Assembly: GCA_965235115.1 (NCBI GenBank)
Contig: OZ249437.1
Location: 34,596,001-34,660,000, forward strand
Direction: 5' to 3'
Length of the DNA stretch: 64,000 nt
Origin: Laetmonice hystrix
Taxonomy: Eukaryota
Shown: in pieces, positions 1,247 to 62,959 of the stretch
Layout: the number at the start of each line of letters is the position of its first letter
Position numbering within the stretch: the first letter of the stretch is position 1
The notes under the pieces: generated by a model
What the model saw: only the letters and a program-made list of their open reading frames with translations
The model's database searches: none
Told to the model about the DNA's origin: nothing
Position numbers and translations under genes: made by a program

Positions 1247-2289
1247 CTCCTTCGCAAAGAATAATTATCTCGGACAAAATGATATTGTTTTCATCGGTCT
1301 CCACACCTTCACCTACAAATGTATTGAACAGGCAGGTCAACGGGGTGATAAATGATAAAGAACAAAGATTCACTTTGCAAAAGATACCACACAATGCTTT
1401 TATCAGAAAGGCCTACAAATGTTACAAGTGTTTCTTGTCCTTGGGAAAACTTACTCATGTCGACTTCCATGACCACTCCAATGTAGGACAACCCGCAGTA
1501 TTTTCGTTTCGACTGCGTTGCCCCGACGTCTGGAATCCGGATCTGACCACTCAAGTCGTGGTAGCCGGTGCGGATTGGTATTATCGGGTGCGTATACGGA
1601 ACCTGCAATAAACGGAAATTACGTGGATTACTTAAAGGGTGTATCCTTCTTCTGCAATGTCAGAATTCCAGGTTCTTTACGAAAATGACAGGTTATGTTT
1701 GTTATTTAAAAAATGCTACATGTAAATCGACGATTTCCACTATAAGATCAAAACATTTTAGTCTACCAGTTCATCTTCTTGGGGATTGATGACGTCATCG
1801 GTGGAGAGATACATTTGCATTCCATATCCACTAATGGTACCGGGTTCAGAGACGTTGGTATATATCCTGAGACTAACACTTGCACAGGAACCAGAATTCA
1901 CTGGGCTTTCCACATCCAGATAGACAGCCTCCAGGTCAACAGCGCCTATAGGATTATATGAATAAACGTTAAAATTATATCAGTGATTTTTCGACAACAG
2001 AAACCTTACAGCTCTGCTCATTTCGTTGCATCGAAAATTATGCATAAAAGTGCAATTTAGGCCCCTACTTTCGTTATATGGCACATTGCCAGATACTGTG
2101 TATAGTTTCGCTGCTCTAGAAACGAACGGCATACATGTCTATCCTGTCCATACAGCCAGTATCACTATGAGGTAGGTATAATATTACTACGAACATAAAA
2201 AGCTGACTTGATGTACCTGTAAGTCCGAACATACTGCATGCGATATATATAATAATGCACGCCCTGCAGGCATGGTGAGACCAATCCAT
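1247..2289 (-). CDS. 5' part of a paralogous CARDB-like-repeat secreted protein gene, divergently transcribed; probably continues leftwards
   Basis: Exons (minus) 2289-2217 (MDWSHHACRACIIIYIACSMFGLT, signal peptide), 1945-1767 (AVDLEAVYLDVESPVNSG...MQMYLSTDDVINPQEDEL), 1602-1455 (VPYTHP...YCGLSYIGVVMEVDM), 1312-1247 (SEGVETDENNIILSEIIILCEG). Canonical GT/AG sites, junction phases 1, 0, 1 and 1. Confidence 0.85.
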
Positions 2290-4014: not shown

Positions 4015-4111
4015 ATGGCGGCAATAGGCCTATATCCTGTTGCCAGACCTTCATATGTTTATGTCGCGGTGCTGATCGCCACAATATTGGTCCTATGTGA
4101 CGCCATACCAG
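4015..4111 (+). CDS. First coding exon: signal peptide [32 protein letters not shown]
   Basis: ATG 4015 just after the acceptor cttgttccag (4010); hydrophobic core [14 protein letters not shown]; phase-1 donor G|gtgggt fits the phase-1 exon at 4496. Confidence 0.8.
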
Positions 4112-7100
4112 GTGGGTACTAGATTCACTTTTGTCCTATTAAAGCACCTTTTACTCAACTATGACGATTTTAATGCTGAGGCAAGGCAATGTCAGCGCAG
4201 GGGTGATATCGTTGTCACAAGGCAACGGACAGCAGGAGCTACTCATCCCACACGACATTGTTTGACCATAGACCATTTTCAATATAGATCTAGATTTAAG
4301 AGAACCTATGTCTTTCAACCTGTTAATATACGTCCAATTAGTAAAAGTAGGCAAAGCATTTATAATTGACGTAGGCCTATAGTTAGTGTGGCATTCACAG
4401 CAATCGTGGATAAGGCTAGAATCACATTACATTTGAAAAATTGACCTATATCATTCAAATTTAGAACCTGACACCTTAAATTTATTCGTTTTCAGATATC
4501 ACGATCACTGATTTCCGGAAAGATCTATCGTCTATACAGATCTTTCCAGAGAGAGTGGCCCGTATGCATTTTACTTTAAACTTTCAAAACACTGGTGACG
4601 ACATACCGCCAGCTTCCGGTAACAATGACAACTATGACGTCAGAGTGGCTCTGACGGACACAAACATATGTTCCGCTACCGCTATGGCCGCTACGGTCGA
4701 GGAATATTTCCCAACTTATTTCCCACAGGTCGACGAAGCTAGAAAGCTGGAGTCAGGTATAGGTTACACATATTAAGGCTGATATTATTGTCTCTATACT
4801 TAGATATCGAAGGAGAAGGCTCTTTGATAATCATCCTTTTGAAAACAAGAAACTAATTTTGAATCATTACATTCATTTTGGGATACTAATTAACACAAGA
4901 AGCGTCTCATATGTCATCTTGCTCTTTGTGAACGGTAATACAGCTTTAATGAAGAGGCCTCGGGTTAATTGTCGACATGATAGGATCTTTGATTTTGATA
5001 TATTTTTGTTGGTATCCTAGGTTTTGCTGGAGGCAGCACACTTACCATCGTGGGGAAGAGCCAGTTTCGCCTTCCCGCTGACAGATGTACAGTTGGGTTG
5101 AAGCTCAACTTATGTTTACAAGTGATTGAGGCACCTGGCGCCTCCTACAATCTTAGTGGATCTTTGTCAAATTGCCTGTGCCATGTAGGCCCACCCATAG
5201 ATTGCTCTGGTCGTAAGTTACTTTGCACATTTTGTTTTGAATGCAGTTTCTTGACTTGACTCCTGATGGACTCGCTTTCTTTTCGTTAGCTTTACTTGTG
5301 CGATTCTTTCCCCCTTTTCAAAAATCCTGGCTCTGCCCCTATGCAAACATTATTAATTCCCCATTTGACATTTGACACATCATCATTATAATGCCACAGT
5401 GGTGCATCCATCGGGAGCGTTGCAACCCCCCCCCCCCCCGCAACTAGTTTTTCTTTTTCCCCCTTTCAACGTCCTGCATTGACCCTGCTTAACCTCTTCA
5501 CCCCCACTCCTGTGCCTACCATTTTCAGAGAGCAGAGATCTCAGCATCACCGAGTTCAACACTCGGGGAGGTGTGTGGCGTACTGACCGGCCGAACGCTG
5601 TCCGACTGACCGTTCGGGTCCGACTCGATGGTGGCGCCCTCTTCCAACCCAGGCTTGTCGCCACCGATGACTTCTCCGTCAAACTGTGGTTGTCACTCGA
5701 TGAGATCTACAACCCAGAGGATACGCACGTATGTTTATATTGCATATACCGGAGCGCGATTTTCCTCAAATGTATGGTAGTCACAATTCAATGTTAACAT
5801 TGGCCCGACACGAGTTACTGTTTCAGGTTTGTTCTTTCAATGAGTGGAACCATGTCGACTTTAATACCACGAATAGCATTGATCTCAGCGTCATAGATCT
5901 GGAATTACAACTCCGAGATTATCGATATTGCGGACCTGCCTATCTTATTGCGCAAGTTCTTCCTGCTAATGGTGGGTGAAAGTATGAGAACTAAGCCATT
6001 GAACACAGCCAAGTTCATCATTGATTAACTTGCCAATGCGTATAATTCCTTAGTGTATAGCTAAATAGAGCTAGATTTGATCAAACACGTTTAACGTTAT
6101 TTCCGTTGCTTGAATTCCTCCTGATAACATCAGGTAGACCTACTTTATCTGTAGCCTATGTCAGTACAAGATGTGGGTGTCTGAAGATGTTTTTCGTTGA
6201 AATCAATATTGCCATATAGTTACCCTTAAATTTCTTATATAGCTTGAAAATTTAACGAACGGACAATATAGCAACAAGCCCCATTGTTCACTGAACGTTA
6301 AGGGGAGAACTAAGCATATTTTCGTTTTACTGACATGCTTTTCCTACAGAGTCTGAGTTTAACGAGTACGACAAGTGGAATAACATGGCTGTTACTTCGG
6401 TAAAGGTCTTCTGTCGCCATTCAGGTATTTGAAAGCATTATCAGTTTAACATTCGCCGGTTGTTTGAGCGGAACAGAAGTTTTCGAAAGATACGTATTAT
6501 CATTATGCAATGCAAGATTAGCAGGGGATGTTAGAATGTCAACAATAACCTCCACAAAAGCTGAACATCATTTGGCCGGTGAAACTCTCCGTCTCTGTTT
6601 TCAGAATCAGTAGTGCCTCAGGTTGATTGGGTGTTGACCGACGCTTCGTTAGCGGTGAACTGTGGCGAGGAGCTCTACAGCGGCGTCAAGTACACATTGA
6701 CATTGAAGGCCAAGGTTCTTAGACTGGCCGATACCTGCAAGCCGTGTGGACGTGCCTACTTTACCATTGACATCGACTCTACTCACGTTGCAGTGCAAGA
6801 TTTAACAGGTGCTGTCTTATTAGGCCAGACTTAACGGATTGTTCGTTTCGCGGCTGCATCAAATTTTCTTGGAACAAAATAAGACTCCTAACCACAAGTG
6901 CCAGCTAATCCAACCAAAGGTTTAGATTCTAATCCCAGCCAACCAAAATACCTTCCATTGAATGACAGTTGTTTCTCTGTGTATTACCAAAGTGCACAGT
7001 GTGTCGTGGTCGGATGTCGCCAAGTCTCCCTTGGCCCCTGTCTGTGGTGGAGGAGTGATGGACATCCAAGTGGACATTACAGTGTCAATAACGGTTAACA

Positions 7101-10100: not shown

Positions 10101-13100
10101 GTCAAAGAACTCTCCCTCCATTCGGTTTTCTGTCTTCTACTTTGTTTGATTACCATGTACAGGCATACAATGTTAAATGTGCGCTGTGATTGTGTTCTGA
10201 CGGTTTTAGTGATGTCGGAGTTCGTTGATAGGCCAGTTCTCAGCAAGACGATTTACATAAACTCGGACTATTCATTTGATGTGAAGGTAGATAAAATCAT
10301 TGTTCTAAGGTGTGCCACATGCCATCTAGCCTGATGCTTTGATAGGTAGTTGGGGGTTGGGGTCAGGACTTGAGCGTTCTGAACACTAGCAGACTAAAGT
10401 TTTAATAACTATTTTGTGGGGGAATATTAGGTGCAAGGCATGATAGAAATAAAAGACCTCTCCTCAAAGCCAGATGAAATCAATTAATTGCTGTTAAAAG
10501 TCAAAAGCACCGATTAGAGGGGATGCGTCCCCCTTGAATTTCCATGTTAACTTATTATGCCTCAGTCAACAGATCATTTTTTATGCCATGTTACATAATT
10601 TGTTTCTTTTAATGTTATAAAGTAAGGTGTGAGGGGGTCTTTAAAATAACCCCAATGACATCACTTATGGACTGCCACAAATCGTGATTGATAATGCTGA
10701 CACATCAACCTATATAATACCTCCTCCTGCCGCCAGGTGAAGGTGACGAACTTGGACTGCCATGAGACAGCGGCTTGCACGCCCTCTGGTGCCGTGTTTG
10801 ATCTCAACGTGACGTTGTCTGCCGATAACAGCACGCTGGGTGGGAGTGACCTGGAGGTGGAGGCCGGCCCGGCGGGCGGTGGCGGGTTCGGGCCGCTGGC
10901 GCCGGGGGCGTCCGTTTTGATCCCGCTGACAGGTCTGTCTGGCATTACAACGTCTAGGAGAGAGTCAGACAACAGACAAAGTCATTATTCGACTGAATGA
11001 TAGGTCTAGCCCTACGAAAGGACATTAGGACGTGTAGACTCTATAAATACAGATCTATCAGGGCCTACTTCATAACAGCCGAGTTTGCTTGATTGGAACG
11101 GTTTCAGAAAAATTGTTCCGAAATACAGTTACAAGTGGCAAAATCTTAACTTCTACTGGGAAGTTGTTCTTAGTTATTCACGGAAGGTAATTTTCCGTTC
11201 ATGCATGGGAAATTCTATTAAATGGTTAGGCCCTAAAGTTAATTTTGGTCGGGGGGGGGAGCTGATCTCCGAAATAGGTTTTATAATGACATTAAATATT
11301 ATCCAATATGAAATGGCCTAGGCCCGCTTTATTAATTTCTTATTTCGTTTTCAGTGCGTCTGAGAGACATGACTCCGGCGGAGTGTGAATTATTGGTTGA
11401 GGGTGATCCAGTCCTGATTGTAGACGTGGTTTCTATATGTCCTTCCCTCAACTTTACATCCTATGGACCCAATGTGGCGCGCGCTGATCTTAAATGTGGA
11501 ACATTCTGTAAATATTTACAGTCATAAATTGACAAATGTTTCAGCTTTATTCATGACCATCTCCAAATGTAAAGATTGTCATTACCCGGGAAAAGCCGGT
11601 TTCTGCAAATTGTTAATTAATGAAGAAAGAGAGATTTGCTACTTTTTTTTTGGCTCTGAAAGGGGAAAAGAACAGGTTAGGTTGATTTGAGATGAGAAGG
11701 ATATATCTTAAAGAGTGAAGTTAATATGCCTCCAACGACTGTGCATAATGTTTTTCATCATCTTAAACTGATTACGTGCCGAAATCTATATATAAATCTG
11801 GTTCAATATGACACAACAATCGGTTTTAATCGATAACAACCAGAATTTGAAACTCTGACAGTTATTTGTGATTTATAATGTAACATATTTTGGTTACAGT
11901 GAAACCTATAGTAACCAGCTTCAGCAGTCCTGAACCAGTTCTATTCCGGGGATTCACTTATGAAGACCTACAGCTTGTCTTCGATGTGATCAATGAGGTA
12001 TAGATCTATACTTGTATGTATGTGTTGTGGTATACATGTATAGACCAAACTGGACACTGTGCAGCAGGAATAGAAACTCCAGTTTTCTTTATCTAAACTT
12101 CAAATAATTAATGTAAGACTCAATGGATATAAATACATACAGTAATACGTCCTGTTCAGATTACTTTACAATGTGTTTATTATGATGTACTGTTTTACAT
12201 TAATTACGGGATTACTTTACAATGTGTTTATTATGATGTACTGTTTTACATAAATTACGGATTACTTTACAATGTGTTTATTATGATGTACTGTTTTACA
12301 ATAATTACGGGATTACTTTACAATGTGTTTATTATGATGTACTGTTTTACATTAATTACGGGATTACTTTACAATGTGTTTATTGTGATGTACTGTTTTA
12401 CAATAATTACGGGATTACTTTACAATGTGTTTATTATGATGTACTGTTTTACAATAATTACGGGATTACTTTACAATGTGTTTATTATGATGTACTGTTT
12501 TACAATAATTACGGGATTACTTTACAATGTGTTTATTATGATGTACTGTTTTACATTAATTACGGGATTACTTTACAATGTGTTTATTGTGATGTACTGT
12601 TTTACATTAATTACGGGATTATTTTACAATGTGTTTACTATGATGTAGCGGGCCTACTATTTTACAATAATTACGGATTACTTTACAATATGGATATTAT
12701 GATGCACTGTTTTACAATAATTCTTATGTGCAGTCGCCTACTGATGTCGTCCAGTCCCGTGTTGGTGAGCCCAACTTCGCGTTCTCGATCGAATTCGTCG
12801 ATGGCACGGGAGGGCGCGTGCAGTGGACTATTGTAGACTGGGACACAACTCTGGCGTGGCAAGCTATACCTTTCTTCGGGCGTGTAACTATCACCGTTAA
12901 AGGTACGCTCTCCCTGCAATAAATTAATACTAAAATATTATCTTTCAGGATGCCCGCAATCCTCGAGAAGTATTTGGATTCAATTGTCATAGGCACCGGA
13001 TCCGGGGGAGGCGTAAGCCCCCAATTCATAAGCTGGGTAGGCTTGCCTCCCCCCAGCTTGGACATTGGATTTGCCCCCCCCCCCTCCCCGGGAGGTCTCG

Positions 13101-16100
13101 GATCCCCCACTCTAAGTATCTTCCGGCGTCTATGACACTGCCCAGTACTCAGAGATGAGACTTCCCCCTGTTTGTGTGCTGCCAGTCAGTGTTTTTCTCT
13201 CCCAAACAAGGTTCATCTAGGTTTATAGTGTCTTTCAAAATGCATGCATGAAATTCCACTAGGTAAGGATTAAGATTTCTGTGAGAAACGTAAGAACATT
13301 ATACACTTACTGGGGTCATGTATCTCACTGATAATGTCCCACTGTTGGCAGGGTCGGTGCTGCCGTCCGTCCTGGACTGCACGGGTCTGGGCCCGGTGGT
13401 GGCGATCGTTGTGTGTATCTCACTGATAATGTCCCACTGTTGGCAGGGTCGGTGCTGCCGTCCGTCCTGGACTGCACGGATCTGGGCCCGGTGGTGGCGA
13501 TCGTTGTGTGTATCTCACTGATAATGTCCCACTGTTGGCAGGGTCTGTGCTGCCGTCCGTCCTCGACTGCACGGGTCTGGGCCCGGTGGTGGCGATCGTT
13601 GTGAACGTGTGTATCTCACTGATAATGTCCCACTGTTGGCAGGGTCTGTGCTGCCGTCCGTCCTCGACTGTCCAGGTCTGGGCCCGGTGGTGGCGATCGT
13701 TGTTTGTATCTCACTGATAATGTCCCACTGTTGGCAGGGTCTGTGCTGCCGTCCGTCCTCGACTGCACGGGTCTGGGCCCGGTGGTGGCGATCGTTGTGT
13801 GTATCTCACTGATAATGTCCCACTGTTGGCAGGGTCTGTGCTGCCGTCCGTCCTCGACTGCACGGGTCTGGGCCCGGTGGTGGCGATCGTTGTGTGTATC
13901 TCACTGATAATGTCCCACTGTTGGCAGGGTCTGTGCTGCCGTCCGTCCTCGACTGCACGGGTCTGGGCCCGGTGGTGGGGATCGTTGTGTGTATCTCACT
14001 GATAATGTCCCACTGTTGGCAGGGTCTGTGCTGCCGTCCGTCCTGGACTGTCCGGGTCTGGGCCCGGTGGTGGCGATCGTTGTGTGTATCTCACTGATAA
14101 TGTCCCACTGTTGGCAGGGTCTGTGCTGCCGTCCGTCCTCGACTGTCCAGGTCTGGGCCCGGTGGTGGCGATCGTTGTTTGTATCTCACTGATAATGTCC
14201 CACTGTTGGCAGGGTCTGTGCTGCCGTCCGTCCTGGACTGCACGGGTCTGGGCCCGGTGGTGGCGATCGTTGTGTGTATCTCACTGATAATGTCCCACTG
14301 TTGGCAGGGTCTGTGCTGCCGTCCGTCCTCGACTGCACGGGTCTGGGCCCGGTGGTGGCGATCGTTGTGAAAGTGGTCCCAGACACTGTGCGCTTGGCCC
14401 AGACATACGGTTACATGACAGCTGACGTCCTCTATTATCAGAACGATACCACGGTCCGGTGTGACGCCCGTAAGTTTGCCGCGCCACTTTGATCATGTTT
14501 TTTCTACTTGTATACATACGTAAGCCTACGTTTTCGTATATTATACGTATACATAATAGAGTTGAAGGAGAGGAATCTGGATATCAGGGGCTTTGAGCTG
14601 GGTCAAGTTAGAAAGTTGTATCAGGGGAGAAATTGGTTGCAAACGGCGGGGTGCCGCCCCAACCTTTTGGAACTGCCAATGCAGTGTTGTAGAAAAAAAG
14701 GGCCAGTGACTTGCTTTGCTTGTTCTGCTATGGAATCAATGAAATATCTAGGCCGACATACTGTAGGCTACATAAAGACTACAATATTAGGACTGCCACA
14801 TTCAGCCTGAAAATCTCCAAAGTAATTGATTTTGTTCCTTACTGTACCATACTATTAGACGGTTCTTGTTCCTTTCATTAACAACACAGATGGAATAGAC
14901 ATCAGCGTCACCGACTTTTACTTACGAGAGAGGCCGGAAAGCGTGAACAGGTATAACTGTATGACCCGTGATGAGCCCACCTCCTACACACTCGAGTTAC
15001 AGATCACCCAAGGTGATGGCTCTGACGCCTTCCTCGACCAGGTTCAAAATTTCGACTACGCTTTCTGTCTCTCCATCGGGCCCAACGTCGACCTGCAGAA
15101 CGACTGTGTCATTCAAAAAACCTGTAGGTATTCTCTTTCTGATCTCAAAGTTTACATTAGGGTATGTATACTACACTGGCGCATCCAGGATTTCACTAAA
15201 GGGGGGGGGGGCACAGGAAAATAATTCATTGTTTGCATTACTAAAGCTTTTTTGTTGTATGTAGGACAAGTTACAACCATGTGCTTCATCATGTTCATGT
15301 TGTTATGTGTTTAATCTAAATACGATAAAATTATTTTAAAATGAGTATATAAATGAGCACGTGCCGCCATCCTCCCCCCGATTGTGAATGAGAATGACAT
15401 ATTCCAGGTGATCAAGGGTTAATACTTCTATGTTCACAATAACTTTTAGCTTTGAGATTTCTCGATCCGGTTTTTCAAAATGTAAGATCTTCCTGAAGCT
15501 TGAGCTGAACACGTCCGATTGTATGGTTTGCTAAGAGCAGCCAATCAGAAGCATTGAGATTGAAGATAAGCCAGAACGTACATTTTGAAAAACCAGATCC
15601 TTGTTGTTTTTCAGTTCTTGACCCTACAACTCAAAACGACACGTTCTACAGTGTACTTACCGATCAGAGCACTACGATAAGGCCAAATGGAGACAACCTT
15701 CTCGTGAGAGATGACCAATGGTGCGGGGGCTTCTATTTAACGGTTGTTGTTTTTAGGACAGCCGGCTGGCCAAGCTCGGGATATAGCTGTAAGGAACCTT
15801 TGTATCGAAACCATAGTCTTACAGGCTGATATTGTGTTTGCGAGGCGACAGGATAATTGGGTAAAACTTTAATGTGCAAATGGGACTCGAGATCATATTC
15901 GTATGATAATAAAGAAAATGCCATTGTAACTGAATAGGTCAACCAGTGTGAAATTAGAAAGCTTACAAAAAGGGTAATGAGTTAGGGAGGTAATGGTTGT
16001 TGTACGCCCAGTGAGTGGATTGATGGTTGTTGTACGCCCAGTGAGTGAATTGATGGTTGTTGTACGCCCAGTGAGTGAATTGATGGTTGTTGTACGCCCA

Positions 16101-19100: not shown

Positions 19101-22100
19101 GCAAAATCGATCTGAATTCGGATGATAATATCGGCTTGGCATCTTTCTTTGTCAATTGTCCAACGGGTACGTAGTCGTTGATACTGACAAAATCTTTAAA
19201 CTGCCCGAAGTAGCCTACTGTCTTTATACTCTTAGGGTTGTTTCTGAGGGTTTATAATATCACGTCGTATACTTTCTCACTGAGAGTGGATTCTTTTTAA
19301 ATCATTATTTCTTTTGGCACCACAGAATTTCCAAATGACCTCTACACCATGGCGGGAACGCTGAGGGTCAGATCTTCCGTTCACCCGGATGTAATTTCTC
19401 TGGTGACGTTGTCAGATGTCGTCGTCAGATATATGTCAGCTCTCGCCAACCGCGAGTTTGATCTCAAGGTATTTCATGAGTTCGCATGTAATTTTGAGAA
19501 ACCCTCAAGTTGCCTTCACCAAACTCCTAAAATGTAGAACCTGCATGGCAGCAATTACCGATACAAGACGTGAAAACGAGATCGACCTTCAGTTGTATGT
19601 GTGTGTGTGTTTTAGATGTATGTTCAAAATGGTGGCCCGTGTGGGAACCCGTTATCCATTGACGTCACACCATCCCATTGGCATTTCGGAGAAAAAGGCC
19701 AAAACATGGATACAGTCACAATTGATAAGGTAAAAATTGTATGAATTTCGTACCGAGTCACAAAGCAGAACTAATAGAACTACGATAGGATCGCACGAGT
19801 GAAGCATAGCGCATAATAAGAAAATGTAGATGTTTATAAATACACAACCCCCCCCCCCCCTAAAAAACAAAAAAACTGGAATTCATAGTCAACCATGTTT
19901 ATAAAAATGTATCACTCTCTTTGACTGGTGGGTTTAATTAAGGTATAATTGTTATATCTCTCCTGGTAGGTCGTTGGCTCCCTTGTCATTCCGAGGGCAG
20001 CATGTGCGGTAGGTATTAACGTTCTCTGTGTCGGAGTGAGAGGCCATCCTGCAGATATCACCTCCAGGATGGAGCATCCTATCAGTAACAATTTCATCTC
20101 GGTCCCCATCAGGTGTGCTGGCAACGGTGAGGTTTATTTAACTGTGGTAAAAGTTCATCATTTCTCTTCAGTTATCTTGTGTATTCAATAGTTTAGATTG
20201 GACATGTGTCTTCACAATCCCAGTTTAACGTGGTATATTTGTTCGTGTTTGTGTTTAAACAGATGAAATAGACCTGTCGTGTGCTACATCTTCTACCGGC
20301 GATGTGCATGTGCAACTTGAAGTTGAAGGCCTTATACCTAAGCCTACGCTGACGGTTGACTATATAAAAACCTCGGGCCTACGTCTGGAGGTGGACGTTA
20401 CATTGACAGGTTCGGAAACAATACCTTTGATTAAGTAGGTCGATAGGCCGTGGCAGAGAAATTACGTTGAAATACCGTGACGTCCTAAAAACGGTAGCGT
20501 CTTCGGTCCCCTTAAAGTAGATAAGGTATCAAATCACACTTGCGCTGATTATTGCTCTGCCATTTTAAATTTCCCGACCGTGTCAGGATACAGCTCTGGT
20601 TGGGACAAGCAGCCTGATACCGCACCAGCCATGTTCAACATCCGACTCGAGATTGTCTGCCACGACGGCAGTCAGAGGAGGGAAATCCCATATGACGTAG
20701 ACCGCCACGTCATCAATGACGTCACGCGAACCTCCAAAACACTCCGCTTAGGTAAGTCCCCTCTCCCTCCCTCCTTCCGGGTGCTGCCGACGTAATGATA
20801 ACTAAACAGTTACCAATGTGACATCAATGTAAACTTTACCACTCTTGAGGAAATGATTTACACGCATTCCACATTTTCTTAGATTGTGAGAGTTTTCCCA
20901 AAGGACAGACTGAATCTTTCACATTTCGACTGTAAAAGAAGAGAAAGACACAGAGAAAGAGAGACAGCGGGGAGAGAAAATGAAACTTACAGTCTGTATT
21001 TTTTCCATGTTTTATATTTTCCTGTTGTCTGTCAACCATGTCACGTAGGTGGAAGGCTTCGTTTGCCCCCAGAAGATTTTTTAGACTTGGTTGGGACCGA
21101 TTGCCAATTTGAGGCAATACTCGATTCCGAAAATCAGATCCAAGAAATGGATGAGACAAACAACCGATGCACCCTCAATGGGGTGACCGTCACCACTTTA
21201 CTGCTGGAAGGTAGGCCAGGAACATCGAGAAATTCATTCCCATCTGGCATCACCAAATTAAACTTCTAGATTAAACTAATCCTAAACACTAAAAATAAGG
21301 CCACCTCGCGTGATCTTGATGCTTCTCGCAAAAATAGTCCGACCTACTGTAACATGACAGTAAGGTGAAAGATTTTACACCAGTAATTTTTACCGGAAAT
21401 GTTAAGGGTGTGTAATTACACCAGTAATTTTTACTGTGTTTTGGAGGTGTCCTCATCAATTCTATATCGAGTTATTTCCCTTCCAGGGATCGATCTGATA
21501 GCCGAGTCGGTGGACGTGACCAGTGCGTCTATGGCCCACGCGATCGTCGCGAGCGACAGTGTCAATAGCTACCTGGTCACATTTACCGTCAAGTACAGCG
21601 TTTTCAAGAACCCGGCCTCGGACGCGATTTACGAGTTTACCTACCGAATCTTCGCCGAGAGTTTGAACGGAACACGGTTTAATGTGACCGAAGAGCCAGT
21701 GGTGGCTAACACGTCCGTCAACTGCGCGGAGTGTAAGCAGCATGAAATTCAACAAAATGTTGTTGAAGTTTATTATGCACCTTTCTTGTTGTACATGTAT
21801 TTAGCACATGCTGGCGTAGCTAGACGTTCCATTATGCCATGATAAAAGTTACATTATTAAAGCATAATGCATTGTTTCGAGTAACAGCCGTGGTTTTAAA
21901 TGAATGCGGCATAACGGTGCGAAATCTTAACGGTAAATGTCGTCTATGCCCTCGGCTACGCTTCGGGCATATGTTACGCCATTACACCGCCTCGAAGGCG
22001 CGCTATATGAAATCCATTAAAAACAGCTTCCTCTGAAAAATCACCAACAGAAATGACGCTGATGTCAGTATAATTAGGTGCTTTAGGATGATCCGTTTAA

Positions 22101-31100: not shown

Positions 31101-34100
31101 TAGTCTAAGGCCTTATCTAACCTAACAGCCTATGTCTGTATTTTGGAGTCATTGAAATGAGAGATAGTCGGTGATTGCTTTAGATCTTGACAAACTACAA
31201 TTTTGTCCTGGAAAACTCCTGGAATCTGTTGCAGACTACCTCGCGGTTTACAATGTCGAGAAAAGTGGTCCTGCCACTATTTTCGCTGACGTTCAAGTCA
31301 CCTTGGACTTCCAAATCACGGTAACGAACGAGGGGAACACACCTTTACTGGGCTGTCGTCCGCCCGTCCACGCCATGCAACCATTCGTAGCCCTCTCAGC
31401 CTCCGACTCGTATGAACCATCACTGGATACACGACTCCCTGTGACAAACATGTCGCTCGGTATAAACATAATGAAGTCTCTAAACTTTGGCCTGAAGTGG
31501 AAGGAATTATCATGGGCCTTTATTCAATTAGTACCATACGGAAATACAATTATGCCAACTTATCCATTTGTACAATGCATGTAATGGCTACAATTGAATT
31601 GCAAATTGTATTTAAAGATTGATTGATTGTATTTCTTATCATCTTAAAGTGCATTGTTGTACCTATAGACCTATATCTGATGTTCGAAATCTCACTTAAT
31701 AAGTAAAACAGTGCGAACATTGTGATTTCCTACCAGAGTTGTCGTCCTTACTGAGCCGTTCCCTTCACCCTGGCGTGAAACGTGACCTGCTTGGCGTTCA
31801 GGTGACCTTCACCTTGCCCCCACATGAGTGTGACGGCGCTAACTACCTCATAGTTGGCGTTCTGGCGTCGGGCTGGTGTCAGCAGTCGTCTGAGCTTACA
31901 ATGACCAATAACTACCGAGCGTTATCGCTCGCTCGCAAATGTCGCGGTAAGTAAACTGCTTTGAGAGAGATGGAGGGAGAATACCAATCAACCGGCAACC
32001 AATGAATCAACCCACCTTCCCTCCAGGATATAGAGCAATAAATGTAGCTGTCAATACGCTAGCAGAAGTCTTTGGTTTGATAAATGCACAATGTTGTGAC
32101 AAAAACAGAATTTTACTTCTTCGCATTCAGATCGAACAAAGTTCTACAAAGAGTGAAAATGCAGATATAGTCATCTTTGTGCTTGCTTTGTTTACATTAC
32201 GAAATTTCAAGAAACACTGAAACCAAATATATGATAATTAGGATCTCTTCGCACAGTTGAGGATTCCGTCGACATTCGACCTGCTATTAAACCGGACTCA
32301 GTAACGTTAGGTTATACGGAGGGTTACCTCAATGTCAGCTTTTCGTACGCAATCCACGGCTCCGGCAGTTCTATCCTAACGGGAATAGGTAATGGCTTTT
32401 CACTGATATAAGTTTTAATATAGTTAGGTTGAGGCCCCTACCAAATAAAAATATATCCTTTCATGTATTGTAATCTTGTAGTCAGCATTCTAATCCGCAT
32501 TACAAAGTTATGTGTACTACAGTATATGCATCATTTGAGAGCAATAAGCATCCCACCGTATACGATAAGTAGGCGCCACATTCTTGATTGACCTTTTATT
32601 GGTGATTTGTCGGATATAATGGAGTCCGGATGGTTAGCTCGGAGGATTGAACAACGCAGTGCTCAGTGACGCACCAAAACTGTTCGGCCCCACTGACTGG
32701 CTGACTGACAACGATTTCTTTTTATTTCGATCAGATCACAGTTTCTGGCTGTCCTCCGACCCCATCCTTGATGTGGACAGTGACGATTTGCTGCAGGTCG
32801 AACTTGATGACGGGTTTCTGACCTATGACCTCTCCTCCCCTCCCACCTACATGCCAGTGACCGCCTACATCCACGCTACCATCTATTCCCCCAAACATTG
32901 CGGGAACATCTATTTACTGGCCCAGATCGACCCCTTGGGTCTCATAACGGAGACAGACGAAACGAATAACGTATTCTCAGTTGGTATCTTTCAAAGTGGC
33001 GCCAATTCTACTTGTGGGCTACTGGGCTTTCCTGAAGGTAAGTGGGGTTTATATGGGCTTTCAACTCATGCTTCCCGGAAGTTAGTTTCATTCTGAAAAA
33101 ATATTCCCATGCAGTCGCATTTGTGCCCCATTGATAAAGAAATAAAGTAAAGATGGCTTTTCGTTGGGTTATGTTTTCTTGCTGTAGCCCTATGAGTGAA
33201 TACTAATACAACTTCTAACATACCAAAACAACATAAAACCGATTCTGTCATGTTCCAGATTTGTTTTCTCTTGGTGTATCGTTGCTGTACGTATCCCCTG
33301 AGAAACCCCCGGTCGGGTCTCCCATAACGTTCTCACTGGATTTACAAGCGAATTGTGAGCTGCACGATCCAAGTACTTGCCCAGGTCCAGTCATCCCCCA
33401 AACATCCTTCCACAATCATATCAAATTCATACTCAAGGTAAGCCTAAGAAAATATCATTTTGAATTTATCCCACCAAAATGAGAAGTGTGGAGAATAACT
33501 GCTTGGTAGCATTTTCTGACTAGACTGTAAAGGGATGTATAATCAATGAAAACTCCACAGAACATATTTGTTTTTCAGTTGGTTGACGTCAACTTTGATG
33601 ACATTGGAAACACGAATCTGATGACTATCGACGCTTACAGGAAGTCGGGACTACTCCCTCAAAATGCCTTAAGATGTGATTTCTCTGTAAACACCGGTTA
33701 GTTTAGCCCCACCTCCCCCCACCGCCGAATTTGTAAGATGACATTTCGGAACACACACAGTGTACCAAGCAGGTGTAACAGATTTCAAGGATACAAGTCC
33801 GATGGACCTGCAATCTCAGAAATATAGGTCCGATCGACGGACATAGGGCTTGAAGTCCGTGATGTTGTATGTTATCAATGTATCTTTATACTACTAACAC
33901 TAATCCTAACCTTAACCCTAATCCATGTATTTTCTTAATTCTATTATACGACTTACGTCTTTCATACGCCTACTCCGGCGGAGTTGCGTTTGTTTCACAC
34001 CTGCACAAGGAGTCCCTAACAAAGCTGGCCGCTTGACCTTCCTTGAATTCACTTACAGAATGCCGTATGAATTTGACTGAGAACTTTGTGGTGAGTGACC

Positions 34101-37100: not shown

Positions 37101-40100
37101 TGTAATATCGAAAAGCAAACATCTAAGCCACCGGATCCTGGGGGGTTCACGGGGTTCGAACTCCCCTTGGTAACATTTTTTCTATTTTATCCCATAAAAC
37201 ATTCTTAATTGACCATGCTGATCCCTCTCTCCTTTAGCAAATTCTACCCGTGAACCCCCCCCCCCTCCCTTTATCAAAATCCTGGCAGAACAGGCCCATC
37301 CACTACTGCCGCCCCTTTAAACAACCTATAACCAATTAGTAACCGAAATTCTTCAATTTCAGCTAATGTCCAGATTAAGGATCCTTCCCAGTGTACACTC
37401 GCCAAGGCGTCGGATGCCAGTCCTATGTTCTTCGTGAAAGCCAACATAGATTCAAACTTTTCAACCGCAGCATGTAACGATTACTACGGCATACCGATCG
37501 ACAAAAGTGACCTTAACTGCAAGTATGGTACGTACAAATATTCTTGTCTTACCAAAGTTCCAATGCCATCGCAAATCACTTTTATCTTTGAATTGAACGA
37601 ATCACAGTTTTAATTCAGAGCGTTGGCTTAGTGTTTTGCTCGATGACTTGCAGATGTCGTGGATTTGTGTGTGGAGGAATTCGACGTCAGTAGAGACGGT
37701 GTATTTGAATCCATGATCGCGGGGGATGAATACACCTATGCGTTAACGGTGCAGGTCATTCGAACGCCGCTGGGTCAGTATTCTCAGCCTAGAATATAAA
37801 ATTACTACTAAAACCATATTAAAGTTTACGTTGCGGTTGGATGGAGTTGGATCATTATGCAAAACGAAATTTACGAAAAGAAATTACATTTAAAGGAGAT
37901 ATTCCCGAAGGAGGCTCGGCGATTCTGACTGAGTTCTACATAAGTTATGACGATGTCTACAGCATCGATGACGTAGTGATATGGGTGCCACCGATACAAA
38001 ACCAACTGACGGGAGACGGCTCCTCCCAGGCGACAAGTTACAACGTTAAATTCGGCGCCAAGGGGCTGACTGTTGACATTGACAATAACCCAGAGCTGCA
38101 ATTCTTCTGTGGATTAATGTACATCATCGCTGTTATAGAAGATAAAGTCACCTATCCACCAAATGATCCAAACATAAATAACAATCATAAAAGCCTTAGA
38201 CTCCGTCTGAATTGTGAGGGCGATACGCTAGGAGTGGAACATTTCAGCATGCGGTTGTCTTCTCCTCAACAGTTGTACATCCACACGGGTGTCGACTTGT
38301 GGTTCGATCTCTCCGCTGTGGTGTGGAACTATTTGCTGCAGGGCATACCCGCTGCTGACGATGGCCGGCCACACATGCGATTTCTCTTGTATCTCTCGGC
38401 AGACAGCGAGCTGGACGTGGACACGGACTCTCCCGTCGATATCCTCGACCCCGGACCTCTGGCGGACACAAGAACCCGGGCCCTCAAGGCTAACTCGTCC
38501 ATCACTTTGAGCGGGAAAGTTTTGCTGCACCTTCCGTTTTCAGCGTGCACGTCGCGTTACATGCTACTCGTAGTGGAGCAACGTGTTCACGTTTCGGAGT
38601 ATGACAAAATCATACGGAATAATTACCGTTATTTATACCTATCAAACATTCGCTGTTCTCTTGTGTATGTTGACTGGATCGTCAAAACATTCGAAGTTTT
38701 ACAAGTTGATTCCACGGCATACTCCTTCAGGCTGGAGATTGTCTTTCGAAAAAAGAACTTCATCGGACCATTTGGAAGCCCTCCTGAACCGCTCGTTGAC
38801 TTCAAATTTTACATTTCTCGGGACAGTGTGTTTGATGTCGGGGATTGGGCGGTAGATTTTGATTGGGAAGATCACCAGGGAATACTGCAGCAAGTTTTAG
38901 AAGATGATGAGCACGTACTGATACTTGACAACTCGACCCAGTGGATACAGATAGCAGAGACTTTCCCACGCTCGTACTGCGGTTTGGTGTACATGATCGT
39001 GCACGTAGATAGTTCGAGTCGTGCCATGGAACTCTTGGAGACTAACAACTTCGCCGCTGCCCGAATACTTATTCCCTGTGGTCAAGGTATAATGGTGTAT
39101 TTTTTATTATTACACTTACATAATGTACAGGAGAAGTCGTTTAAACGACTCCCAGTTATATGGAAATTACGTCATATGTGAAACCTCCGTAATATGTGAA
39201 AGAAATCAACGTCCTATGTAAAAATCAACGTCAAATGTAAAAACAAGTGCAATGGCATGTCTAACCTACCTGACGGCTAACCCCATATTAGACAACAAAG
39301 TATTCAAAACGGCAGTTGAGATAAGTGACAGAATTGCTTTCCAGATGTACTCCAGTTGGCAGGACTCCAAGTTCAGACAACGCCTGTACTCCGACGTTCA
39401 CCCTCTACGATTCACCTCAACTTCATGGTTGCCAATGTACGGAACGCACCCATCCAACCTTATGGAACCGCCTCCCTCTTTTTCCTAAAGGTTAGGGGAA
39501 AATGGTCATTTCTATGAATATGGTTGGGTCAAGGGTGGAATACGCCTATCAATTTATAGCAAAGAATCGGAATTTGGAAATCCAATCCCAATGAGGAAAA
39601 CGGTTTGCGGGAAATGTTTCATCTATAGGATTTAGGGTGGGGGTGGGGGGGGGGGACATATACTTACAGTTCATATATATGGCATCGGTTAATGGCTGAA
39701 ATTTAATGATGCATTTTAATAAAAGGGCGAAGATATCCTCCCGGATGTGACACCCCATTCAAAACATCACCTAAGTCATAGTTCACAAACTCTGCTGTAC
39801 CGTCATTTCTTTAGGATGCACCACTCGCTTTTGTCGCATACACGACAGATGCCATTAATCTTAGTATTAAGACTCCGAACATTTTAGAAAATGTGGTTGA
39901 TGCCAAAAAAACACTATGAACGGTAAATACTGTTTGGTTACAGGTGTACGCCAGGACGCCCGGTTGGCAGAACGAGCATGACGTCACACCCCTAGAGTGG
40001 ACGTCAGGTCAAGCCGGCTTACAGACCAATAGTCTGGGTCCATACGGCAACGTCACTTTCACCGAGTAAGTAAACAAACATTTTATTGAAAATCTGGTAA

Positions 40101-43100
40101 CGCAACGGGGTCCCCTCGACATACTGACTTGCGTATTTCTTAATCTTTGTGTGATTGAAGGATCGGGAAGTGGGGCTATTGAACGAGTCATCGAAGTAAA
40201 AATGATACCCTCGCAGTCTCTACCCCGCCCCACGCAATGCGGTCTCAAACTATGCCCGACTCCCATCGACACTCCTCCAGTCCGACAGATCCCACTCCGG
40301 AGGTCGGTTGACCACCAGCCACCACGGACCAGTCAAAACAGCGTCCTACAGAAGCCAAAAAAAAAGATAGACTGAAGGGGATACCCCTCTCTCCCCTCCC
40401 CCAGTCTGGACCCGCCACTGCATGCTTCTGAACATAGATGATGGGTCTGCGCTCAGTGATTAGTTCCTGGGGGGGGGGGAGGGGGGGGTAGAATTTAAAC
40501 GACTTCAGTGCCAAAAGTTATAATGTCAGTGCATACTCCTGTTTTCGCCATTAAATCCACCTTTGATCAATCCCTCGTCTGCAGCCTTAGCGGAGAGCTG
40601 AGCGGCATCAGTGAAGCTTGCCAGTCTATCAGCCACCTCCGTGGCAGGCCAATGTTGTACTCTGGACCGGTGGAATTGGTCGTTTGGATCATACCAGCCT
40701 TCGCCTTCAGTGTGGACCAAGTGAGACAGACTGAGTCGGCCCTTGACAACAACGTAGACATCCACCTGGCTACCCTTTCATGTCGTACTTCAGGTCAGTG
40801 GCTTTAACACGGCCCGGTTTTTGTTATCAGACCAGTCAAATAGAACATAGAATATAGAACTAGACAACCCAGGCCCTGTGGGATCACATGTTATGTCATA
40901 GTCCAGTTGATATGGATATAACTCATTAAAAATTCTAAAATGTGTTATGTCTTCTAACCATTCGGAGTAGCGTTCCTTGGGCTTCTGCTGTCGCGGACAA
41001 GTTGCTGCGTAGTGTATGTTATGTGATGAGGCGTATATTGGTATCATTTAGATATAGAAGATCTCAGCATACGAAGTGCCAATATATCAACCATGATTCT
41101 TAACGACAACATTCCATTCAATCTCATTATCGGAATTGAGGCCGGATGTAAGTTTTTTTCTGTTTTGTTTTGGGTAAATGTGTTTGGAGTAGGATTTGCA
41201 TTACATGGATTATTATAAAGGCCAGACCTGAAAAAATGCATTTCTGTAGAAAGAAGTACATAGAACTTTTGGGAGTCCTAGATATTGATTAATAGTTTTA
41301 AAAAATCATGATTTCCATTATTTTGTCTGAGCAGAAAGTTTGATTTCTTTCACCTCCAGCTGATCCTGGTTGGGGTTACCTTACGGCCTCAGCGCCTCCA
41401 GCGTTCCTCTACATGATATCGATTGAAGCCGGCGGTTGGAGAGTCACTGCCGATGTGCCCGTCAAGACGTCAGTTCTTCACACAGCTCTCGACGGTTATC
41501 TCACCGAGAGAGATGTCTCTGGCACTCTCCCACTCCTCTCAAAGGACTTCCTCTTCCTGTGCTATTTTCAAAGCACTGCTTCGGTTAGAATCGAGCTCGA
41601 TACGGAGAACGAACGCGATGAATCGAATGAAGAAAATAACGTCCTAGTGTTGACCGATGTCTTCTTTGAAGCTTCAAGTTGTCAAGGTTTGTGGAGGGGA
41701 ATGAGGTCAGGGTGACTTTAAGGGTGAGATGGAAAAAGATATCCCAAATGGAGAGAGAGAGAGAGGGGAGAGAGAGACAGAGACAGAGAGAGATGGAAAC
41801 AGAGAGAGACAGAGAGAGAGAAAGAGAGTTAGATTTTTTCCTGTGCAAAAAAGTGCCGTTAAAGTTAAACAGGCGTGATAGACAAAAAAATAAAAGTAGG
41901 CCTAATACCAAAATTCTGATTTTTGGTGTATAACGTATCATGGCATAAGCCTCACAATAAAACATTAAAAATAGTAGATTTCCATTCTAATATTATTATG
42001 GGCAAATTATGGGCAAAAGGTTATCAATTTAACATTGAATTCAACAGATGGTGTGACTGTTCCCACGCCTATTTCACTATAAATCAATCCATTTTTTTCA
42101 CTCCTCTGAAAATAGCTTTCTATACGACTCGAGTCTAGCGCCATTGCTGGTTTCAGATCGGCTAATCGATGTATGTGTCAAGACCTTCATTGTTGACGAT
42201 TTAACCGTTGATACCATGATGCTGGACACAGTATACCCGTACACGTCGGTATTTGGTGTTGCTAAGACAGGAACACAACCACTTGGAACCACCGGCTTAC
42301 AGTGGACAGTCGTCCTGTCCTTTGACAAAACGTGTAACCTGACAGAGGACGTGGTCCTTACAGAGGGGTCGCTACCGGGAAGTCAGTTTCCGGGTTATGA
42401 GGTCAGTCGGAGCCATGTGTCACACTAGAACCTAGAATTCGCACCATTCAGACTGGAGGTTCAGTCTTCATTGAAACCGACTTGTCGGTAGTGTCGGTTC
42501 GCTTTGATTTGTAGCGTGAAAGGGGTATTCGAGACTAGGAATGTGTGACTCTGTGGAGTTGAGATCGTAGTTAGTACGGACAATATAGGAAACTAGCATT
42601 AGACTTCAAATTTGCCCACATTTTCAGCACAGGCCGATAAGTCTCGACTCCGCACAGTTAGCCTATAGAGTTGGTTATACTTAGACAAATTAGTAGGAGC
42701 ATACTAAATTTATAATCATTATGGACCTGCTCTAGAATAGGGAAACGTTGTCTAAGTCATGTTGTGCCCGTCCAACAGGGCACAGAGGCAGTGAGCGAAT
42801 TGATCTCGGTGGATGGCACAGTGTCCATTTCGCTGACGTCGACAACCCACAGATACTGCTGGAAGCAGGTGTATGTAGGGGCCTGCCTCGACACCCGTCG
42901 CTACCTTGACATCGATAACACAGACGATGGTCACTTTTACAAGGTTATCCTAGACTGTGGCGGTAAGTCACCGTCACTGGCACTGCCAGTCTCTACATGT
43001 TAGAGTCATGTTTATGAAGTTACCTGGAAATAATTGGGCTGCTTCAAAAACAACTTGCAAATAGTCTGTCTTGTCAAATTGTGGTTTTCTGAATATATTC

Positions 43101-62887: not shown

Positions 62888-62959
62888 GTATGTCACAGTC
62901 AATGCAGATTCCTTTATTTAGCCTTTATTTCCCTCAGTTTGACATGTAGGCCTATTATA

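Follow-up and report, generated by a model that had tools for sequence, protein, structure and literature searches.

The CARDB domain (PF07705) is regarded as a feature of the surface proteins of bacteria and archaea, and in the literature searched it was found in prokaryotic contexts only. Solved examples are PF1109 of Pyrococcus furiosus (2kl6/3idu) and MA_4588 of Methanosarcina acetivorans (2l0d), and the archaeal consensus reads P-D-L-x-V-T ... V-D-x-x-D-x-x-x-E-x-x-E-x-N-N. MUC4 and SUSD2-type proteins combine a NIDO-AMOP-VWD module with EGF domains and a transmembrane segment. SiiE of Salmonella and MpIBP of Marinomonas are giant Ca2+-stiffened adhesins composed of tandem Ig-like domains. 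Bacterial teneurin-like proteins often bear CARDB repeats (PMC6425310).

A stretch of 64,000 nucleotides from Laetmonice hystrix (hereafter the window) was analyzed. Judging from its sequence, the region 4496-42962 probably encodes, with a likelihood that we put at about 80%, the N-terminal ectodomain of a giant type I membrane protein of roughly 6,000 aa or more, made of units homologous to CARDB. An earlier note on this DNA had placed an array of 33 units between these two positions. Both ends of the multi-exon array, which lies on the + strand, coincide exactly with splice sites: 4496 (first acceptor) is the base directly after ...TTTTCAG, and 42962 (last donor) is the G preceding GTAAGT, after the terminal Cys of the last unit. 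Exon 1 (4015..4111, + strand), as read from the sequence, contains a start codon, a 32-aa hydrophobic leader resembling a signal peptide and a phase-1 donor (CCA G|GTGGGT). Its phase-1 join to 4496 reads ...AIP-D-ITITDF, the junction itself forming the D of unit 1. Between 4.4 and 43 kb, an iterated unit profile gave 40 matches on the + strand and none on the - strand at a domain E<=1, and 57 and 2 matches respectively at E<=10. Grouped by profile coordinates, the matches correspond to about 32-33 units, close to the number first given; the units measure about 140-150 aa and occupy one to three exons each, the array having been read exon by exon. Introns, which the note had considered to be acquired, are indeed present and highly regular: 12 of 13 exons with a terminal Cys close two to four codons later at a phase-1 G|GT donor, and the acceptors ahead of the D-L/I-x-V unit start are likewise in phase 1. 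Transposon and satellite insertions sit in the introns of the array. Its best conserved part is an intronless open frame of 452 aa (37823..39178, + strand), which covers the end of unit 27 and the whole of units 28 and 29 with unit-profile scores of 54, 87 and 98 bits.

The signature of the units was examined on 62 units from at least five species. The family consensus is D-x-x-V-x-x-F ... G ... F-Y-L-S-x-D-x-x-x-D-x-x-D ... I-P ... C-G-x-x-Y-L ... E/D ... N-N ... C. The motifs described at first thus hold at the level of the family, whereas their strict forms concern only a minority of the units of this gene: the ExDExNN-type end occurs 4 times in the array, CGxxY(L/I) about 5 times and (Y/W)LSxD...D about 9 times, degenerate versions being found in the majority of the remaining units. 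In the family, C106 and E/D123 are present in 61/62 units each, N129 in 59/62, N128 in 56/62, C139 in 52/62 and D4 in 38/62, and exactly two Cys are present in 48 of the 62 units. The Cys pair, which the note had proposed as a gain, is animal-specific, being absent from the 20 archaeal domains sampled. Divergence between units is extreme: within this gene, pairs of units show hardly any similarity (phmmer E>0.004), and identity between units of one protein is below 25%.

These units are divergent but genuine homologues of prokaryotic CARDB. The alignment of animal units was compared by hhalign with 20 archaeal domains, each scoring 39-77 bits on PF07705. The two families align in register over the whole domain (columns 4-136 versus 3-107) with a probability of 97.5% and E 8.2e-12, as against E 0.24-0.93 for reversed or column-shuffled controls; the C-terminal third alone reached E 3.5e-9. 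When the animal profile was run against a whole Methanospirillum genome, only two ORFs were matched (E 6e-6 to 4e-4), both with Pfam CARDB domains. The start D-L motif and the end V-D...E..E-x-N-N motif of CARDB are both found in the animal family, and the units most resemble a CARDB subtype in which strand C is followed by Y-L-S-x-D...D and the closing V-D...E..E-x-N-N is preceded by I-P...G-x-Y-Y. Pfam CARDB matched 18 of the 62 single units, and any other family was matched by one unit only. Summed Pfam CARDB scores in four long homologues were 89.4 (a full-length homologue), 44.3, 35.2 and 26.2 bits. On single exons of the window they were 21.9, 18.7 and 13.6 bits for a gathering cut-off of 22.7, and a six-frame PF07705 search of the own genome gave no match at a genome-wide E<=0.01. 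The highest of these exon scores (E 2e-4) is that of unit 22, which presents the clearest CARDB signature of the array (WLSSD..D..D, CGNIYL, ETDETNN); its middle and C-terminal part (32740..32991, + strand) matched the unit profile at E 7e-13 and the archaeal CARDB HMM at E 0.006. The two exons of unit 20 (30059-30331 and 30488-30601, + strand) matched the unit profile at E 2e-15 and 4e-7, and the N.G...YLS part of this unit matched the archaeal HMM at E 0.0065. For the C-terminal motif of unit 12 (21105..21167, + strand), E was 0.002 with Pfam CARDB and 0.0013 with the archaeal HMM.

Structure models point in the same direction. The AF2 model of unit 29 (pLDDT 93.5) has a β-sandwich fold like that of the solved CARDB structures, and a model of units 28 and 29 together reached pLDDT 87.1 and pTM 0.74. 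With Foldseek, the best matches in PDB were the CARDB domain of PF1109 (2kl6, 3idu), and those in the AFDB clusters were annotated 'CARDB domain-containing protein' (E 7e-5, TM 0.58-0.66); in the ESM Atlas the nearest named clusters were all CARDB, and a search of Swiss-Prot structures returned only weak ASF1 and GH2 matches. The CARDB relationship put forward in the earlier note is therefore upheld by profiles and by structures, and no Ig, FN3 or cadherin family of animals came to the fore, none of them being matched by more than one unit in Pfam scans of the 62 units. That the units would be ordinary animal Ig-like or E-set domains with end motifs similar to CARDB by convergence, a reading to which the concentration of single-unit Pfam matches on the last 25-35 profile positions and the tie of CARDB with GH2 Ig-like domains, ASF1 and others in structural searches alone might lead, is very improbable and largely refuted: with the end motif excluded, the N-terminal two thirds still align in register with archaeal CARDB (E 1.2e-7, controls E>0.2), the animal profile retrieves only CARDB ORFs from the archaeal genome, over positions 9-139, and four separate landmarks have the same order and spacing in both families.

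The gene continues downstream of the array in the order signal peptide, CARDB-like array, EGF, TSP1, EGF, NIDO, VWD, many calcium-binding EGF (cbEGF), TSP1 and transmembrane segment, all on the + strand. EGF or cbEGF exons are located at 43304-43507, 49104-49340, 50133-50390, 50501-50647, 52183-52383 and 52511-52735 (Pfam EGF_3 above cut-off), and a TSP1 exon at about 50980-51100 (Pfam TSP_1 above cut-off); both assignments are also obtained by tblastn of a 23.7-kb transcript-like contig from another species. A DIRS-like element is present in the intron at 43.6-48.9 kb. NIDO exons cover 53102..54311, with a Pfam NIDO match of 27.3 bits (cut-off 25) at 54105-54311, a weak one at 53925-54101 and a tblastn match to the NIDO region of the 23.7-kb contig at 53135-53284. 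VWD exons cover 56052..57697 (Pfam VWD 24.8 bits, cut-off 22.9), with the C-terminal part of the domain at 57359-57697 and the N-terminal part, a weak match (E 0.16), at 56052-56309. Calcium-binding EGF exons, identified by Pfam EGF_CA and tblastn, occupy 60589..62946, and their series runs on past the window end, up to about position 69.5 kb. In the downstream genome, with the numbering of the window continued beyond its end, a TSP1-like exon is found at 69303-69506, and a hydrophobicity scan revealed a transmembrane exon at 72158-72418. No AMOP match was obtained at E<=1 in the exons at 54.5-55.5 kb, a Cys-rich stretch, or in the uninterrupted 672-aa ORF of the 23.7-kb contig. No coding repeats rich in Pro, Thr and Ser were seen, the tandem repeats of the region being intronic satellites.

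Homologues with the same layout were found in the annelid Owenia fusiformis and in the amphioxus Branchiostoma; in public databases the animal homologues are labelled 'unnamed', 'hypothetical' or 'uncharacterized'. The 23.7-kb contig carries a collinear array with 32 unit matches, the same domain order, a NIDO domain scoring 81.9 bits and, at its end, a transmembrane segment with a short tail. The block of units 27-29 is collinear in this contig with 27% identity, and ORFs orthologous to the 452-aa frame in other assemblies are 27-40% identical to it. Units are much closer to the orthologues at their own position than to the adjacent units of the array. Since about 32 collinear units are found in another species, the array is old and position-specific, and the age that the note had proposed for it is favoured over a recent expansion. 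Three such genes are present in the genome, strongly diverged from one another, and one of them is head-to-head with this gene: its first unit exons are at 1459..1940 on the - strand, the unit profile gave 19 matches on the - strand and none on the + strand between -20 kb and 2 kb, and its array extends over at least 32 kb on the - strand, with matches down to contig position 34,563,367.

A decaying pseudogene, a recent horizontal transfer or a contaminant could be suspected behind units so extremely diverged and introns with transposon and satellite insertions, and not a functional animal gene. We consider this most unlikely. The splice sites are intact, regular and in phase 1; the 452-aa exon is open throughout and shares 40% identity with an orthologue; the 57 profile matches, weak and strong alike, all fall in open frames of a single strand; exons for EGF, NIDO and VWD are joined to the array in a layout shared by annelid and amphioxus homologues; and the locus lies 34.6 Mb inside a chromosome-scale contig of 54.7 Mb. 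The regularity of the splice sites and the transcript-like contig of the other species suggest that the gene is spliced and expressed in Laetmonice hystrix.

As to function, we infer Ca2+ binding, a disulfide and a rod. The units would make up an elongated stalk, on the order of 100 nm, that projects from the cell surface and in which each unit junction may be stiffened by a putative disulfide clamp (Cys106-Cys139) and by acidic clusters. The topology of the β-sandwich would place D-x-x-x-D-x-x-D at the C-terminal pole of unit n, while unit n+1 would present the start-motif D and E...N-N at its N-terminal pole, so that the acidic clusters of consecutive units would face each other and could bind Ca2+, by analogy with cadherins and with the giant adhesins of bacteria. 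Among the solved CARDB structures, 3idu bears the title 'in complex with di-metal ions'. Because each position of the array has its own conserved sequence, such a rod probably bears position-specific binding surfaces, serving adhesion, spacing or barrier. A less likely reading is that the CARDB-derived units serve mainly as a diversified set of modules recognising microbes, glycans or partner cells, in the manner of immune pattern recognition, rather than as a structural stalk stiffened by Ca2+. Identity below 25% among the units of one protein implies very varied surfaces, the three genes of the genome have diverged strongly, and TSP1, EGF and VWD, the partner domains, are present in invertebrate immune and adhesion receptors. 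However, conservation is one-to-one by position and about 32-33 units are also found in a species that is only 27% identical, a pattern expected of old, constrained positions rather than of continuing diversification; with three loci, the family is also small, unlike expanded immune families. The structural stalk and recognition are not mutually exclusive roles.

The use of CARDB arrays in a giant animal cell-surface protein is undescribed in the literature searched. For its origin we propose, tentatively, a scenario that we hold to be possible but doubtful, in which a prokaryotic-type CARDB module was acquired before the protostome-deuterostome split or inherited from earlier, bordered by phase-1 introns, equipped with a disulfide clamp and expanded to about 33 fixed positions. 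It would have given rise to unrecognised animal cell-surface giants, or 'folded mucins', in which a Ca2+-stiffened CARDB rod does the job of the mucin domain; these would have been kept in annelids, amphioxus and the present lineage, and lost or become unrecognisable in vertebrates and standard model invertebrates. The metazoan adhesion and matrix toolkit gains a domain family with this conserved family of giant membrane proteins built on about 33 CARDB units, which also supplies concrete fragments on which Ca2+-dependent stiffening can be studied and the origin of the module dated.

Like prokaryotic CARDB domains, the animal units have a β-sandwich fold, occur in tandem in surface proteins and show in order a D-L start, N-x-G after strand B, I-P...G-x-Y-Y and the V-D...E..E-x-N-N end; their Y-L-S-x-D...D is found in a CARDB subset, e.g. 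the Methanospirillum domains. Compared with the 20 archaeal domains sampled, they differ by a Cys pair that is nearly invariant, one Cys preceding strand F and the other following strand G, and by a length greater by about 40 aa, with an insertion between strands C and E that bears a short helix. Phase-1 introns at both unit borders also set them apart from prokaryotic CARDB, as do arrays of about 33 units joined to EGF, TSP1, NIDO and VWD modules of metazoan type and to a transmembrane anchor. The layout of the protein is MUC4-like, folded repeats standing in place of the mucin Pro/Thr/Ser region: as in MUC4 and SUSD2, a type I protein combines a very long N-terminal repetitive region with NIDO, VWD and EGF domains close to the membrane, and ends in a transmembrane segment followed by a short tail. 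In contrast to these proteins, the repetitive region here consists of folded Cys-containing CARDB-like domains and not of an O-glycosylated Pro/Thr/Ser region, AMOP was not detected, cbEGF domains are far more numerous and TSP1 domains are added. A natural comparison thus opens between a folded repeat rod and a glycosylated mucin as long cell-surface projections. The protein resembles SiiE, MpIBP and cadherins in having β-sandwich domains repeated in tandem by the tens, with conserved acidic residues close to the junctions, and a binding region projected far from the surface. The domain family differs (CARDB versus BIg or cadherin), the putative disulfide clamp and the membrane anchor of eukaryotic type are peculiar to the animal CARDB family, and, Ca2+ binding being presumed here, these adhesins serve only as a model of mechanism. 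Animal teneurins lack CARDB arrays but are likewise metazoan transmembrane proteins built around bacterial-surface-type domains (PMC6425310), and the present family would be, after them, a second clear case in which a surface module of bacterial type forms the core of an animal receptor at the cell surface.

The window is animal DNA (C2:34,596,001-34,660,000 of a 627-Mb assembly with 35 contigs), and the translation of its + strand contains many short open frames carrying the landmarks named in an earlier note, which was made from the sequence alone. The distribution of CARDB-like units was analyzed with a profile built by jackhmmer, then iterated over the window extended by 20 kb at either end. 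Between 4.4 and 43 kb all 40 matches at E≤1 are on the + strand; at E≤10 there are 57 on the + strand and 2 on the − strand. The 22 kb upstream of position 2000 hold 19 matches at E≤1, all on the − strand. Ordered by profile coordinates, the matches of the array represent about 32-33 units, in agreement with the 33 counted previously. Exon 1 (4015-4111) contains an ATG, encodes a hydrophobic leader of 32 aa and has CCA G|GTGGGT as its donor; its join to unit 1 is in phase 1 (...AIP-D-ITITDF). Unit 1 begins at 4496, immediately 3' of a TTTTCAG acceptor, and the final unit terminates at 42962 (...ILDC-G-G|GTAAGT); the limits 4496-42962 proposed by the earlier note thus coincide precisely with the array's first acceptor and last donor. 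A search for RNA runs containing this stretch returned none. The sole long intronless stretch, 37823-39178, encodes 452 aa or about three units. Introns of this region also contain tandem repeats: about 12 copies of a 95-bp unit at 13270-14490, open in all three + frames, and two minisatellites at 12130-12840 and 15980-16810, the second with a repeat period near 30 bp at about 16.0-16.7 kb; both minisatellites give rise to long spurious ORFs on either strand.

Pairwise similarity among the units of one gene is nearly nil (phmmer E>0.004). We aligned 62 units of nearly full length, taken from the window and at least five other species (alignment A1), for which the consensus is D-x-x-V-x-x-F ... 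G ... F-Y-L-S-x-D-x-x-x-D-x-x-D ... I-P ... C-G-x-x-Y-L ... E/D ... N-N ... C. The best conserved residues include C106 (61/62), N129 (59/62), N128 (56/62) and C139 (52/62), 48 of the 62 units have exactly two cysteines, and no stretch of 7-10 columns is conserved. The motifs described initially hold as a family consensus; their strict forms are rare on the + strand of the window, with 4 occurrences of the E-x-D-E-x-N-N-type end, about 5 of C-G-x-x-Y-(L/I) and about 9 of (Y/W)-L-S-x-D...D.

The relation to the CARDB domain (PF07705), suggested at the outset from these motifs, was examined by several approaches. With Pfam, three exons of the window match PF07705 over its last third, with 21.9, 18.7 and 13.6 bits (cut-off 22.7), and the summed CARDB scores of four long homologues, 89.4, 44.3, 35.2 and 26.2 bits, are all above the cut-off. 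When single A1 units were scanned, CARDB was matched by 18/62 at E≤1 and any other family by one unit only. For a profile-profile comparison, 24 archaeal CARDB domains (39-77 bits each on PF07705) were gathered from Methanospirillum, Methanoculleus, Halosimplex and Haladaptatus genomes, the prokaryotic sampling being archaeal, and 20 of them were aligned (A2). The alignment of A1 with A2 by hhalign covers the full domain with a probability of 97.5% and E 8.2e-12, compared to E 0.24-0.93 for reversed or column-shuffled A2; the part N-terminal to the C-G motif alone gives E 1.2e-7 and the end part alone E 3.5e-9. In the reverse direction, the animal unit profile matched only two ORFs of five whole archaeal genomes, both from Methanospirillum and both Pfam CARDB carriers (E 6e-6 to 4e-4, profile positions 9-139). 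The matched domains read ...F-R-L-S-L-Y-L-S-P-D-A-L-I-T-E-Q-D... and ...I-P-D-D-L-S-P-G-T-Y-Y-L...; with Y-L-S-x-D and I-P...G-x-Y-Y present in archaeal domains, the "central" motifs of the units represent a CARDB subtype that already exists in prokaryotes and was not invented in animals. Conversely, an HMM made from the archaeal domains matches the window exons at 21105, 30170, 32878 and 41575 as well as exons of an upstream paralogue, each time on the coding strand.

The structure of a single unit was predicted with AF2 from A1 (pLDDT 93.5, pTM 0.87) as a seven-to-eight-stranded sandwich with one short helix. Foldseek places the CARDB domain of PF1109 (2kl6) at the top of the PDB matches, where 3idu is also listed, and CARDB-domain proteins at the top of the AFDB clusters, the related DUF11, APHP and choice-of-anchor families being lower; structural similarity alone does not single out CARDB. 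In Swiss-Prot, the structure search matched ASF1 and GH2 alone, both weakly; no Ig, FN3 or cadherin family of metazoans was among its results. The unit profile had no significant match among PDB sequences (three of its seven matches are known CARDB entries, E 1.8-5.4), and a six-frame search of the Laetmonice hystrix genome with PF07705 gave no match at genome-wide E<=0.01, because single exons are too short and too diverged. A language-model search of the ESM Atlas, which we take as a lead only, found bacterial CARDB proteins in all the nearest named clusters (0.82-0.90). Pfam, profile-profile comparison, reverse search and structure agree, and we conclude that the units are genuine CARDB domains that have diverged strongly.

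Several features distinguish these domains from the archaeal ones sampled. The cysteine pair, C106 directly preceding strand F and C139 directly following strand G, is absent from the 20 archaeal CARDB domains sampled, consistent with the gain of cysteines proposed in the earlier note. In the AF2 model strands F (107-116) and G (130-137) are antiparallel and adjacent, which would bring the two cysteines together at the C-terminal pole and makes the disulfide that was also proposed, C106-C139, likely. An insertion of about 40 aa between strands C and E appears as a gap in the hhalign alignment and contains a short helix (69-75 in the model). Introns are present as well, as had been supposed. 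In 12 of 13 exons with a terminal Cys, a phase-1 G|GT donor follows 2-4 codons downstream, the 13th junction being within the 452-aa exon, and the acceptors 5' of the D-L/I-x-V start are likewise in phase 1. A unit therefore forms a symmetric 1-1 module; extracellular domains that are shuffled in metazoans typically belong to this class. Many units have additional internal introns, at positions that appear variable.

The taxonomic range of the array was obtained by an exhaustive phmmer search of 1.84 billion representative proteins with the 452-aa exon, which returned only 24 clusters. A word-indexed protein search found nothing with A1, and only itself with a 3,469-aa homologue, because divergence has left the family without shared 5-residue words. 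The named phmmer clusters come from the annelid Owenia fusiformis and from Branchiostoma, where the proteins are called unnamed or hypothetical; the search also returned the 3,469-aa protein P0003. Most others are ORFs of about 300-450 aa on ENA or Logan contigs and are the orthologous exon in other animals; the best match sits in ENA assembly ERZ26222911, on a contig of 291 kb. The sole "gammaproteobacterial" match (P0019) is a TPR/NTPase protein, spurious and no relative. This search revealed no homologue in vertebrates, arthropods or nematodes, a result that means no detectable similarity only. The unit profile has 32 matches 5' of the EGF region in L146, a Logan contig from another species, against about 32-33 units here. 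Units 27-29 of L146 are collinear with the three-unit exon (27% identity), and three to four more units follow in both. Among the units tested, positional orthologues match strongly (for example, 126 bits for unit 28 against P0001, and 85 bits for unit 29), whereas the same units barely match their own neighbours. By these comparisons the array is old and its length fixed, with position-specific units and no recent expansion or homogenisation, which supports the "old array" reading advanced earlier. Its presence in an annelid and in amphioxus places its origin before the protostome-deuterostome split, unless transfers were multiple. As every unit border tested has a phase-1 intron, the array probably arose through duplications that took place in eukaryotes.

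A search of the genome with the unit profile identified three loci, all on contig C2. The window gene (+) has a paralogue in head-to-head, divergent orientation, with about 2 kb between the first coding exons; it lies on the − strand (1-2300 of the window and further upstream), starts about 2 kb upstream of exon 1 with its first unit exons at 1764-1940 and 1459-1524 of the window, and extends over at least 32 kb to about C2:34,563,000. The third locus contains CARDB-like unit exons at C2:51,190,849-51,250,941 (+), where introns or decay may explain stops within some matches.

Downstream of the array, on the same strand, Pfam identified EGF or cbEGF exons at 43.3, 49.1, 50.1 and 50.5 kb, a TSP1 exon at about 51.0 kb, EGF exons at 52.2 and 52.5 kb (with tblastn), NIDO at 53.1-54.3 kb (27.3 bits, with tblastn), VWD at 56.05-57.7 kb (24.8 bits) and cbEGF exons at 60.6-62.9 kb. 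Between NIDO and VWD, a Cys-rich stretch at 54.5-55.5 kb (+) has no assigned domain; AMOP, expected by analogy with MUC4, was found by Pfam neither there nor in the 672-aa ORF of L146. Beyond the window end, with coordinates continued, tblastn located more cbEGF exons up to about 69.5 kb, and the downstream genome contains a TSP1-like exon (69303-69506) and an exon with a clear transmembrane segment (72158-72418), both on the + strand. The introns here also contain insertions and repeats. A large insertion with seemingly transposon-derived open frames occupies 43600-48900, between the first two EGF exons. A short frame in a VWD-region intron (57985-58197) has no Pfam match at E<=0.01; we take it to resemble the DDE core of PIF/Harbinger-type transposases. 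Tandem repeats lie between cbEGF exons at 60790-61310, where the sequence reads as repeated H-S-L-E-E-V at 60.9-61.3 kb, and beyond the window at 68200-69300 and 70440-71640.

The homologue in L146 (23.7 kb, 23,696 bases, run SRR23372228) is near-complete, with about 32 units. Its six ORFs are separated by a few frame breaks: 158, 721, 336 and 3,469 aa of units, then 672 aa with EGF and NIDO, and 1,452 aa with 14 cbEGF, a transmembrane segment and a short tail. As these ORFs are consecutive, on the same strand and without introns, L146 is very probably a transcript. The domain order and transmembrane segment of the window gene and of L146 indicate that the predicted product is a type I membrane protein.

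The CARDB family itself is already known, and the 3,469-aa protein (P0003) was already tagged PF07705 by automatic Pfam annotation. Database names of the animal homologues are uninformative, and the literature searched contains CARDB only in prokaryotic contexts, with no paper found on CARDB arrays in animal proteins. The novelty is an enlarged, intron-framed and, we infer, Cys-clamped form of the module, set in a metazoan architecture that is itself new. A series of 33 β-sandwich domains would form a rod with a length on the order of 100 nm atop the EGF/NIDO/VWD/cbEGF stalk. By sandwich topology, the N-terminal pole of a unit would hold the start-motif D, the loop that follows strand B and the one with E...N-N, and the C-terminal pole would hold the D-x-x-x-D-x-x-D loop with the two cysteines; in tandem, the two clusters would oppose each other across each junction. 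This arrangement suggests putative Ca2+ sites stiffening the rod, as Ca2+ sites do in cadherins and in the giant adhesins of bacteria. According to its title, the solved CARDB structure 3idu was deposited with two metal ions, and an AF2 model of two units (pTM 0.74) is compatible with a defined junction. Among known proteins, MUC4 has an AMOP domain, which was not detected in the window gene; the layout of the two is alike, folded CARDB units occupying the place of the mucin region.
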